A DNA stretch of 64,000 nt from Trichosphaerium sp. ATCC 40318. Taxonomy: Eukaryota > Protista > Tubulinea. The stretch covers positions 186,001 to 250,000 of the forward strand of contig JALMLS010000228.1 in NCBI GenBank assembly GCA_038496445.1, given 5' to 3'. The notes beneath the pieces are model-generated. The model was not told the origin of the DNA. It made no database searches and saw only the letters and a program-made list of their open reading frames with translations. A program made the translations under genes and the position numbers. This document shows, one piece after another, positions 27,843-31,929 of the stretch; positions within the stretch are counted from its first letter, which is position 1, and each line of letters begins with the position of its first letter.

Positions 27843-30800
27843 TTATGATGTACCACGATCAAGTGTCCATACATTCCACAAGTGAGCGTTATTTCCAGGA
27901 GCTCTTGGTCTGCATCCGTTACAACAACTTTGCTTTCTTACACACCAACATTTAACAGCCATTTGGTCTCCGTATGTGAGCCATGTTAAGTCTTGAGTGA
28001 AGATTTCATCAGAACATTCTGAATCTCTTGAAGCGGCAGCTGCACATTCTCCAGCGAAATGCCATTGATTCCAGTCGGCCATACGTCCTCTAATGAGTAC
28101 TTGTTTATGGCATCTGTCTTCAGCACCGTTGTTGCATGTGTGGTGTCTTACGCCACCTCCAAGGTTGACCCAGTATCCGTAGAAACCGTCACAGAACATG
28201 CCAGCTTGTTTGAGGATGAGTTGAGGTGGATTAAATGGAGGTGTATCAGTCTTTGGTTCCAAGTCGCAGTTTCTACAGTCGTTTGTCATTGGCCATTTAG
28301 GAATACGTGTGATGTTTTTGTTAAGGTTCACAGCATCACAAGAAATGCACTCGTCTCCGTGTCTCCATGGGATATCTTGATGTTGAGGTGGGATTTCAAA
28401 GTCGGCAAATAGACGTCCTGATCCCTTCAAATAACATGTCGAGTGGTAGGCTGGATCTCCGGCATGTACGACTTCTGTTGGACCGAAGGTTTCGGAAGCC
28501 AAACGAGCACGGACAGTAAAGCAAACGTCAGATGTTTGCCAGTCAGCGCCGATGTTGATTACGACATCTTTGCATAGTTGAGGAAGGAGATCAGCTTGCC
28601 AGTTGTATTGGTTTGCTTCAGGGAATCGAGGCATAACAATGTATCCTTGACATCCACCTTGTCTGTTTTGACATTGTCTAGCACAAACACTAGCGTCATT
28701 GTAAATTCTGTGACAATCTAAATGAGTATGTTAGTAAGAATTACATACAACGCAGGTACTAAGGAAAAAAAAACTTACCAAAAACGTCACGGCGATCAGG
28801 GAAATAACAGTGATCAACACGACTAAAAATCAAGTTATTACATGTAATAAATAAGTGTAAAAAAAAAAATTGGCACGTGAGAAAACACGTGTGAAGAGAA
28901 AAAAACAAGAAAAAGTGAACGTACGTGAAACCACCATCAGGGTTTGGCAGACCATAGATATCTTGTACTTGTCTGTTGACGTAGTCAAGGTCAATACAAT
29001 CTCTGTATCCTCTCCATAGCCATTGTACAACATAAGCACCAAACTCAGATCCGGCAGGAACACGAAGTCTGACCATGTCGGCATCTTGAGGTCTGTGTGC
29101 GTGATGTTCAAACTTGAATATAGCTCTAACAAAAGGCATCTTGCTGTTTGTGTATTCGCAGTAGTTATTTACTTCTAGGCTGTCCTTGTATCCGAATAAC
29201 GTAGCATCATCTGCCCAAACACCGAAGGCTTCTGGCCTTGGGATGAAATTTGGAGAGGTTTCAGGGATCTCTCCGCTGTAGTATTGTAAGAAAGCATCAA
29301 AACCAGCATCACGAGCTCTGAATTGTCTGTGGTATACAGGCAAGTTTTGGCAGTCTCCATTTGATGCTTCGTTGAGGTACGTCTCCATGGAGTCGAAAGA
29401 AACTTCTCTGAGTCTTGGTTCATCTTCTGCTTTGACGATAACGTAGTATGAAGGTTGTGTATGACCAACAGACCACTCAACTTCAAAACGTTGTCCTGGA
29501 CCGACTTGAACGTGAGGAGAAGCTTGTCTTCTTGATGGACATGGTGTTTGGGTACTAGCAATATCTGCGCTTCTACCAATTCCAAATTGCCAGTTGTGAG
29601 CTTGAGTGGTAGGGAAGGATACTAAAGCGATGAGGAAGAGAGCCAAGACAACTGAAGTTGTCATTTTTCCAGAAGAACGCATCGTCAAACCGAGGACAGC
29701 GAGAGCCATGAACAAGAAAGATGTTGTCGATTTTGTGGCAGGTGAAGTTGCACCTCTTGCGGCAATAACAGTATTACCTGGGTTTGCAGGAGGAAGAGTG
29801 TTTGCAAGACATTTGCACATACGAAGTCTAACAAAGAAGGTAAGTTCAAAGAAACCCGAAGTTAAAAAAAAAAGCAAAACAGTTTGACTTTGACTTTAGC
29901 ATACCCGATTCTTGTATCACCGCTTCTGGAGTCACAGGTAACTCTTCCTGTATTACGTCCTTGTGCTGCACATCTTGTATCATCAAAATAGCAAAGGCCA
30001 TCAGTACCCATTGTAGCTCCTTTGTTGCTACATCCGCTGACATATGGAAGTTTGCAAGGGAAACTTTGTGGAATAATGAGCTGTTCGATTCTCGTTGGGC
30101 TGTTAACACGCTCCATATGGACGACATCACATTGGAGATTCTCTTCAGCACATCTATCAGTACAAGATTGACCTCTCTAAGAAGAAACATTAGTGAGGGA
30201 ACAATAGTAAAAAAGAAAAATATTCAGAAAAACGCTTACGTTGGATTGAAACCATGTTTGACGTGGTTTACCGCTTCTTGATTCTGTGAGTTTGAGCGGA
30301 CCTGTGCCACCGTTGTTTGGCCAATAAAAGGCGCCAGTATTGGCATCACCTTGCTTAATCAAACAGTGAAAAGTTACTGCTCCTGTTCCTTTTGCAGGAG
30401 CCTTCCACTTCCATGTTGACTTGAGAGGCTTGAGTTCAGCGCTGTTGTGTGTTATACTTTGACGGCACACATGTGTATTAGGCCAAGGCAATTGAAAGAA
30501 TGCTACAAAAGAGTTAAAACATGATCAGATGGAGAAAAGAAAGCAAATGAACAAAGTCAGAAAATATAGTGATTCGAGTCATTGAATTGAATCACTTAGT
30601 TGTTCCGAAAATGTTAAGACAGTTTTTTAGAACACTTACGATTCGTTTCATCTGGTAAGAGCCATTCACCGACTCTGTTACCGTCCTCGTCTTGAGCATA
30701 GATGAGAATACCGCGGTATTTGAAAGCGTAGTTGTTGACACGAATACTTATGTCCATGACCATTTCAGGAACGTATTCGGTCTTTTTATCGTCTTCGTTA

Positions 30801-31045
30801 CCAGCCCAAGTGCTGTAGGCATTGCTGCGAACTACTTTTGTGGCCCAAGACATACGAGGCTCTGGTTCCTTTCTACAAGTGAGTCTGTCGACTCTACCGT
30901 TTCCGAATACTCTGTAATCAGCAGGAGGGCATCCCCAGTCAGGAGAAGAAGCATCGCAGTTAGGTACGGACTCAGTAGGCCTTGAGGCACCGTTTACCAT
31001 GGCTACCATAACCAAGAGCGCGCAAAGTACTAAACAAGGGCGCAT
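27843..31045 (-). CDS. Secreted polyprotein: signal peptide - Reeler domain - Cys-rich domain - GPI/TM-like segment - internal signal peptide - His-brace LPMO-like domain - Cys-rich C-terminus
   Basis: Six exons join in frame. Reeler motifs (YRGILIYAQD..NRVGEW, SITH, WKWKAPAKGTGAVTFHCLI); two hydrophobic stretches then TQA/HNW; EWSVGH; YVVQWLWRGYRDCIDL. Confidence 0.8.
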
Positions 31046-31929
31046 TCTAAAAAGAAACAAATTAGTGACGTTTTTAGTATCACGTGATCAGAAAAAACAC
31101 AAGGTGGTAAAAAACATCCAAAAAACAAGCTTGGACGTAGTTTAAATTGACGTACTTAAAAGATTTGCAAGTGAAGAGCTGCTGCGAATGCTTTTTGTGC
31201 TGAATGAAAATAAATTTCTTTAAATAGGAAGAGAGCTAGCGAACTGTGTACTTCTTTGTTCGCTAGCAAAAGTGTTCTGTAGCGCTAGAAAATGCTAAAC
31301 AAGTAGTTTTGGGTGTATCAGTGTTTGAAACCCTTTTGTTGACACAGTGATACAAAACCAATAAATAGCGCTAGAAAACCCGCAAGTCGTTTTCCTTTAT
31401 GTGTCGATGGTTGTACTTCGCTTAAGTGGCACCAACAACGGCCTGGTAATGTCCCGAACCATAAATCTTTTCATATCACCGCTTCAACACTCTCTCATAC
31501 GTTCAGTCGATTGCACGTTGACAAGGCACAATACAGCTGCTTTAAGAACGACTCACTTACCCGTACACATATGCGAACATACGCTTTATGACATGCGGAA
31601 CAGCATACGCAAACAAAAGACTATGAAGACCACGAGAATGAAAAAGTCACTATTTTGTTTTAATCAAAAAAGAAATACTTTACCCGCAAAAAGCGGACGG
31701 CCAGTTTTGCGTTTCTTATGACATACTATGGTGTTCATGCGAAAAATACCTCTAAAAACTTAAAACGGGTAAACACATGTGAACAACGATAATTGATTGG
31801 AAGCCTTCGGTTTTTTTAACCCACGTGATACTTTGTACCGGAAAAACAACGATTTTTTTTTGAAATACCACCTGAAAGGATATTTAAAGTCAAACATAAA
31901 ACCCAAATTCACGTGCTTAAAGAACATTG

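Follow-up and report, generated by a model that had tools for sequence, protein, structure and literature searches.

Trichosphaerium sp. ATCC 40318 carries, in a 64,000-nucleotide (nt) stretch of contig JALMLS010000228.1 (positions 186,001 to 250,000; hereafter the window), a minus-strand gene that joins a Reeler-like domain to a lytic polysaccharide monooxygenase (LPMO)-like domain beginning with histidine. We propose that its product is one precursor, which signal peptidase would split into an anchored Reeler partner and a secreted LPMO-like protein starting at His391, a reading to which we assign a probability of about 0.72. One mRNA would give one 920-residue secretory precursor, whose N-terminal signal peptide would carry the Reeler and Cys-rich domains into the lumen of the endoplasmic reticulum. 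Hydrophobic segment 1 would halt translocation, a short basic loop would remain cytosolic, and hydrophobic segment 2 would re-insert N-in/C-out in the manner of a signal peptide. Cleavage by signal peptidase after T-Q-A would yield two products in a 1:1 ratio: a membrane-tethered Reeler/Cys-rich protein, and a soluble protein with His391 first, which would be expected to bind copper and may have oxidative activity.

Six minus-strand exons within 31045-27843 joined in frame to give 920 codons and a TAA stop (Table 1). The in-frame splicing into one reading frame that the initial annotation had noted was confirmed, including the IG/LRMCKC joint between exons 3 and 4. The order of parts that it had described also held, position by position: signal peptide, Reeler domain, Cys-rich module, a small-residue stretch with hydrophobic segment 1, the loop RSSGK (MRSSGK with its preceding Met), hydrophobic segment 2 with its T-x-A end (TQA), and His391. 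Three hydrophobic stretches stood out in a hydropathy scan, at residues 1-19, about 349-363 and 368-389. The codon for His391 (29598-29596; His1 in domain numbering) begins the motif HNW right after T-Q-A. Downstream of it we located Arg9 of the domain (29574-29572), the second His in EWSVGH (His46; 29463-29461) and, near the end of the domain, the WLWRGYRDCIDL strand pair with Tyr588 (Tyr198 of the domain; 29007-29005). No paralogue of the gene was found inside the 64-kb window.

If intron 3 is retained, the Reeler frame ends at a TAA (29864-29862), so the fusion of the Reeler and His domains depends on this splice. Removal of this one intron would thus decide whether the gene yields the two-part precursor or the Reeler protein alone. 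Among the RNA contigs, none retained intron 3.

We aligned RNA contigs from four runs to the window and obtained splice joints from three of them (X1, X2 and X4). The joints matched the predicted introns (30176->30240, 28822->28925 and 28717->28779), an agreement far beyond chance. The exon 3/exon 4 joint was present at 29827->29905 in X2 and, with one replaced base, at 29826->29905 in X1, X2 and X4. Because the intron bins had almost no depth, the contig material represents spliced RNA. One X1 contig of 696 nt ran through exon 2, exon 3 and exon 4 to 29612, spanning both hydrophobic segments, and the next RNA contig overlapped it, covering 29641-29504. In two runs, contig depth dropped ~tenfold at about 29612-29641, where the signal peptide meets the His; a unitig break specific to a paralogue, or divergence of the sequence downstream, may account for this.

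The listed substitutions between RNA and window (n = 36) were concentrated at codon position 3 of the spliced frame (31 of 36) and were mostly synonymous (32 of 36). Residues 328-398 take in the linker, the two hydrophobic segments and the His; there all 10 RNA substitutions were synonymous, including one in the His codon itself (CAC to CAT). This predominance of third-position, synonymous changes indicates purifying selection on that whole region in this one frame.

To place the junction in its family, exon 4 (300 residues) was used as the query in an exhaustive HMMER search of cluster representatives at 50% identity, which are mutually divergent for that reason. At E <= 1e-3 the search returned 416 representatives, of which 208 also passed E <= 1e-10. 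Architecture mapping, the junction alignment and the counts of internal and N-terminal forms refer to the best 150 of the 416 (<50% mutual identity). Most of these relatives kept the full order of Reeler-like N-terminus, Cys-rich module and His domain, often followed by a C-terminal Cys-rich extension. The His domain was internal in 94 of the 150, mostly at residues 300-450 and in some at 500-920, and immediately followed a conventional N-terminal signal peptide in about 30. In the column of His391, 139 sequences had His, 3 had Asp and 9 were gapped (truncated upstream); an HNW start was present in 139 of ~141 informative relatives, in line with the conservation that the initial annotation had made a test of its reading.

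All 94 internal relatives had a small residue at position -1 (A in 81, G in 8, S in 5) and A, V, T, S, C or G at position -3, with no exception at either site. The same (-3,-1) rule held in the about 30 relatives of the N-terminal type. Two hydrophobic segments preceded the His in 88 of the 94, so that the elements of a stop-transfer/loop/internal-signal polyprotein are all present in the query and in these 88; the predicted conservation of a double hydrophobic element spaced ahead of the His was thus upheld. The loop between the segments had a median length of 5 residues and was basic on average (mean net charge +1.3), with only 2 of the 88 loops negative. Compared with the signal peptides at the start of the standalone relatives, the internal segments had a median uncharged stretch of 19 vs 17 residues and a peak hydropathy of 2.78 vs 2.70. 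By these measures, the internal segments are indistinguishable from the signal peptides of the ~30 standalone relatives.

The fused form occurred as single Trinity transcripts in the amoebae Flabellula baltica and Rhizamoeba saxonica, and a 953-residue fused relative was one uninterrupted gene call on a 10.2-kb metagenomic DNA contig (gene coordinates only). The acantharian Phyllostaurus siculus had the standalone form, in a 60-member cluster with mRNA-sized contigs. A FastTree phylogeny of the His domains required 16 switches between internal and N-terminal forms vs 24 with shuffled labels, and contained two well-supported standalone clades. The tree holds some phylogenetic signal, too weak to order fusion and fission events.

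LPMOs of families AA10, AA11, AA15 and AA16 and X325-type proteins need His at position 1 after signal cleavage, a second His and a closing QWxW...(Y/F)xxCxD strand pair, and hence they normally sit at the N-terminus. The chemistry of the LPMO fold requires a free N-terminal amine. We aligned 125 His domains, numbered from His391 as residue 1, and observed that H1, R9 and H46 were invariant. Conservation was >90% for Y198 and at least 90% for N2, W3, P19, Y74, D144, Y149, P155, D174, G187, W195, G197, D200, D203 and G216. Features expected of an LPMO at the sequence level are therefore present: a signal-peptidase-type site followed by His, a second conserved His and a Tyr on the C-terminal strand pair.

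An alignment-based AlphaFold (AF2) model of the domain was a beta-sandwich of high confidence (predicted local distance difference test, pLDDT, 93.3; predicted template modelling score, pTM, 0.90). A single-sequence AlphaFold model (pLDDT 32) was unusable. In an exhaustive VIA structural comparison of the alignment-based model, the best match was the AA15 enzyme TdAA15A of Thermobia domestica (PDB 5msz; Z 7.9, root-mean-square deviation 2.6 A, 118 residues, model 1-209 on chain 1-195), and the second best was LaX325 (PDB 6ibh; Z 7.3, 128 residues aligned). Further LPMO families matched at Z 5.4-6.9, among them AA9 (6.9), AA10 (6.4), AA11 (6.3), AA13 (6.1) and AA16 (5.8). Nearly every LPMO row started at model residue 1, placed on the mature His of the enzyme (residue 28 in CBP21, residue 35 in CelS2). 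This superposition of the predicted model on solved LPMOs from residue 1 gives moderate support (Z <8). An ESM-Atlas fold search returned haptophyte clusters at template modelling (TM) scores of 0.51-0.53, one of them partly LPMO_10, and the neighbours in a language-model search were LPMO_10, 'polysaccharide monooxygenase' and BIM1-like clusters.

These lines are weak singly but concordant, and they suggest that the His domain is a new, divergent, 'LPMO-like' family of the LPMO fold class. Together with the invariant His46 and the conserved Tyr198 on the predicted LPMO-type beta-sandwich, His391 would most likely form a copper histidine brace. The kinship with LPMOs claimed by the initial annotation therefore stands at the level of the predicted fold, and not as membership of AA10, AA11, AA15 or AA16: the query fell below the curated cut-offs of the hidden Markov models (HMMs) for AA9 (PF03443), AA10/AA15 (PF03067, LPMO_10) and BIM1-like proteins (PF20238). 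Weak AA9 matches occurred in only 4 of the 125 relatives (best E 0.0057). A profile search of the PDB with the His-domain alignment gave an ADP-ribosyltransferase at E 0.43, which we rejected as a chance match.

Several observations weigh against the proposed precursor and its processing. The cleavage is read from sequence patterns, and Met363 and Met369 at this locus allow an extra internal start. The initial annotation had looked to RNA across intron 3 for a single transcript; the joint was indeed seen in three runs, in contigs that are ~91-95% identical to the window (5-9% difference) and so represent a close paralogue, allele or strain. These contigs show no transcript ends. The expected LPMO/X325 fold came out on top in the exhaustive comparison, whereas Foldseek against the PDB gave a low-TM mix of immunoglobulin (Ig)-like, GH123 and AA10 matches. 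Z values of 6-8 are 'middling' by the scale of the comparison tool, and plain Ig-like proteins were also among the structural matches. The query His domain had no Pfam match even at E 1 in an exon-wise scan, and no LPMO of the PDB was found with the His domain by sequence or profile search. The spacing of His1 and His46 along the domain is also shorter than in characterised LPMOs.

The alternative that survives best accepts the cleavage and questions the function: the released domain could serve X325/Bim1-type copper handling, or be a non-enzymatic binding module, and not a polysaccharide-cleaving LPMO. We consider this possible, though clearly the lesser prospect. The rank of LaX325 as second-best structural match, the BIM1-like clusters among the language-model neighbours, and the compact domain with its short His1-His46 spacing all favour it, as do the invariant R9 and the conserved D144, D174, D200 and D203, which are not classic LPMO residues. 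On the other side, the top structural match was an AA15 enzyme, and six catalytic LPMO families came after it. The Cys-rich C-terminal extension, which is possibly PAN-like, could also serve in substrate binding, although this argument is weak.

TdAA15A shares with the query the mature His1, the second His and the Tyr in the last strand pair, but is only 20% identical over the aligned residues, and no similarity was found at the level of HMMs. The query differs from it in HNW, R9 and the early His46, and in that its domain lies in the middle of a precursor and not behind an N-terminal signal peptide of its own. X325/Bim1 proteins resemble the query in their compact LPMO-like fold and cell-surface association. 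An X325 protein has the domain at its N-terminus and carries a C-terminal glycosylphosphatidylinositol (GPI) anchor itself, whereas in the query the anchor-like element lies upstream, on the partner, and the His domain has no hydrophobic tail.

That anchor-like element raises a second alternative, which concerns the fate of the Reeler half after the cut. It could be processed further and become GPI-anchored via the small-residue stretch, perhaps by signal peptide peptidase removing segment 2 and GPI transamidase acting next. In the query and its relatives, the residues S, G, A and N abound in the stretch that precedes segment 1, and segment 1 itself is short (12-14 residues in the query), like a GPI signal. 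A GPI signal is, however, defined as C-terminal, and here a loop and a second helix follow; the GPI-like element (residues 333-362) has 558 more in-frame residues downstream, and could become near-terminal only after further processing. We know of no precedent for a GPI signal followed by a loop and another helix. Nor did a search with the N-terminal alignment, which was saturated by 8000 word-sharing candidates and recovered 2 proteins, yield a standalone Reeler relative ending at such a signal. On balance we regard GPI anchoring as unlikely.

We also considered whether the His-domain protein arises from a separate message or start, through an internal promoter or initiation at Met363/Met369, which would make segment 2 an ordinary N-terminal signal peptide. 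This locus does have two in-frame ATGs just upstream of the second hydrophobic segment, the about 30 standalone relatives do have the domain behind a true N-terminal signal peptide, and the RNA contigs do not reveal transcript starts. Against this, the Reeler frame runs on without a stop once intron 3 is spliced, as seen in the three runs, and fused reading frames exist elsewhere on single transcripts and on one DNA contig. A Met near the loop was found in only 19 of the 88 relatives, about chance level, and the junction Met is not conserved, which rules out internal initiation as the general route. Contig depth was higher upstream than downstream, opposite to what a strong internal promoter would give, although this is a weak argument; if the depth drop means anything, it speaks against a second mRNA that supplies the downstream half in abundance. 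Separate messages or starts are thus very unlikely.

An uncleaved multidomain membrane protein, in which a permanent hairpin keeps the His domain attached and its His internal and blocked, is equally improbable given the small-x-small site before the His in 94 of 94 relatives, the start of the standalone relatives' domain at exactly that His after a normal signal peptide, the short, signal-peptide-like internal segments (median uncharged stretch 19 vs 17 residues), unlike a long transmembrane helix, and the free N-terminal amine that established LPMO chemistry requires of this fold family. In its favour, signal peptidase normally spares transmembrane segments, which Spc1 protects (PMC8277137).

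The proposed cut by signal peptidase has parallels. The enzyme is known to cut signal sequences that lie inside model membrane proteins of yeast (PMC8277137), and it does so too in the glycoprotein precursors of viruses (PMC7926653, PMC7601889). Viral envelope polyproteins such as flavivirus/hepacivirus C-prM-E and bunyavirus Gn-Gc likewise combine a stop-transfer helix, a short cytosolic loop, a re-inserting signal and a lumenal small-x-small site (PMC7926653, PMC7601889). The query differs from them in belonging to a cellular gene family of free-living protists, and in that the proposed cut would create a chemically required N-terminal residue and not a mere separation.

We assessed the Reeler half with an alignment of 47 N-terminal sequences (46 relatives and exon 1 of the query) and scored the query against a profile of the 46 relatives. 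The spliced N-terminus of the query matched this profile at 213 bits (E 1.9e-67) and kept 18 of 18 near-invariant Reeler residues, including Met65 and His154. Pfam Reeler (PF02014) matched 28 of the 47 alignment members (E up to 0.01; best 8.9e-12), and the profile matched the F-spondin reeler structures 2zou, 2zot and 3coo at E about 3e-6 (best 2.5e-6). By these profile matches, the N-terminal domain is a Reeler domain. Met65 (30851-30853) and His154 (30447-30449), both on the minus strand, were 100% invariant in the family, and Trp67 was conserved in 98%. Met65 and His154 are absent from the F-spondin reeler domain, which has Glu at the position of His154; the invariant pair may possibly mark a metal or haem site. 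The Cys-rich module showed a weak likeness to the C-terminal 85 residues of N-acetylglucosaminyltransferase V (GnT-V; PF15024), with E 0.007 in the query and a best value of 1.3e-5 among 4 relatives; none of these matches reached the Pfam cut-off.

In the upstream halves of 93 fused relatives we found Reeler in 32, the GnT-V-like Cys module in 4, plastocyanin-type cupredoxin in 2, DOMON (below the cut-off) in 2 and TSP1 in 1. The cupredoxin of relative P0073 (residues 366-441) was above the Pfam cut-off, had 48 cupredoxin matches in the PDB and lay directly before the hairpin. It carries the type-1 copper ligand motif GGHN...YYCDPHPWM, with Cys, His and Met as well as an upstream His, and the cupredoxin of P0006 (residues 1-40) has the same C-terminal ligand motif (Cys, His, Met). 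A cupredoxin in the anchored half lends independent but limited support to the prediction that the released half acts in copper or redox chemistry. In P0038, P0110, P0039 and P0065, the region between Reeler and hairpin contained either TSP1 repeats, which F-spondin also has, or a DOMON-like stretch that scored sub-threshold, and such insertions place the His domain at residue 640-920. For P0065 a PDB sequence search gave the DOMON lead no backing, and as it stayed below threshold we set it aside.

Since some relatives carry cupredoxin in the anchored half, this half probably has a partner function, be it in adhesion, in substrate binding or in the supply of electrons. A further step would be to see the two halves as a built-in redox pair, in which the anchored Reeler half, with its invariant Met65 and His154, would donate electrons or copper to the released histidine-brace domain at the cell surface; we hold this only as a speculative extension. 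CYBDOM ferric reductases (SDR2/FRRS1 and Drosophila CG8399, reeler-DOMON-cytochrome b561) offer a likeness, as they too join an extracellular Reeler to redox modules (PMC10691727). In relatives of the query, the Reeler half is extended by a cupredoxin, which scores above the Pfam cut-off, or by a DOMON-like stretch, which scores below it; unlike CYBDOM proteins, the query system has no cytochrome b561. If the anchored half supplies electrons, the system would also resemble the reductant-plus-LPMO pairing of fungal cellobiose dehydrogenase (CDH) and LPMO. Fungal CDH and LPMO are separate secreted proteins encoded by separate genes, whereas the query has both halves in one chain with a proposed split by signal peptidase, and no flavin or haem domain was found in the gene. 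That the gene is a one-gene equivalent of CDH-LPMO, its Reeler half supplemented in some lineages by a cupredoxin or DOMON-like module, is likewise a tentative and rather doubtful idea. If true, LPMO and reductant would be delivered 1:1 at the same membrane spot, in a system widespread in amoebae and marine protists.

The gene combines known kinds, the LPMO fold class and polyprotein processing by signal peptidase, in a combination for which we found no description. The initial annotation had known of no account of this architecture, and our search of the full-text literature agreed: no paper connected either LPMOs or histidine braces to Reeler domains, to internal signal peptides or to the processing of polyproteins. 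LPMO-type proteins depend on a free N-terminal His, and the field assumes, and searches for, the domain at the very start of a secreted protein. The present family shows an alternative that many divergent protist lineages conserve: the domain lies deep in a precursor, 300-900 residues from its start, and the general signal peptidase would apparently unmask it. Surveys restricted to the N-terminus may miss these protist members, and the relatives point to amoebae and marine protists. If the proposed cleavage is true, cellular genes would employ polyprotein processing by signal peptidase, of which most known cases are viral, to obtain two surface or secreted products in stoichiometric amounts. 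The fixed pairing with Reeler, sometimes with cupredoxin in addition, points to a partner function for the poorly understood Reeler domain and to a possible native electron donor for the LPMO-like protein.

Table 1. Features of the Reeler/LPMO-like gene, in coordinates of the window.
Feature	Position	Strand	Basis or remark
Exon 1	31045-30640	minus	GT..AG borders
Exon 2	30502-30240	minus	GT..AG borders
Exon 3	30176-29905	minus	GT..AG borders
Exon 4	29827-28925	minus	GT..AG borders
Exon 5	28822-28779	minus	GT..AG borders
Exon 6	28717-27843	minus	GT..AG borders
Intron in the 5' untranslated region, 109 nt	31047..31155	minus	acceptor 1 base upstream of ATG; joint 31046->31156 in RNA contigs of runs X1 and X2
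Intron inside Reeler-like domain	30503-30639	minus	between exons 1 and 2
Intron 3	29828..29904	minus	GT..AG; exon 3/exon 4 joint IG/LRMCKC; splices Reeler half to LPMO-like half
N-terminal signal peptide, residues 1-19	30989..31045	minus	strongest N-terminal hydrophobic stretch; relatives start alike
Reeler-like domain, residues 20-223	30240..30988	minus	exons 1 and 2; 213 bits against the relatives' profile
Cys-rich module, residues 224-313, 8 Cys	29905..30176	minus	exon 3; kept in most fused relatives
Small-residue (GPI-omega-like) stretch and hydrophobic segment 1, residues 333-362	29683..29772	minus	hydropathy peak from residues 347-351 onward; proposed stop-transfer helix
Basic loop MRSSGK, residues 363-368	29665..29682	minus	proposed cytosolic
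Putative internal signal peptide, residues 369-390, ending T-Q-A	29599..29664	minus	-3/-1 pattern; likeness to signal peptides of standalone relatives
LPMO-like His-start domain, residues 391-614	28927..29598	minus	conservation and predicted fold
C-terminal Cys-rich extension, residues 615-920, 22 Cys, and stop	27843..28926	minus	exons 5 and 6, plus the split codon that closes exon 4

The C-terminal extension had no Pfam match, PAN/apple being a weak lead, and was kept in about 35 of the 150 relatives. Its 306 residues showed no hydrophobic tail in the hydropathy scan, and the His-domain product should therefore be soluble. Three relatives (P0007, P0010 and P0090) have WW domains at the far C-terminus, which implies that in some lineages the released His-domain product would itself span the membrane with a cytosolic tail.

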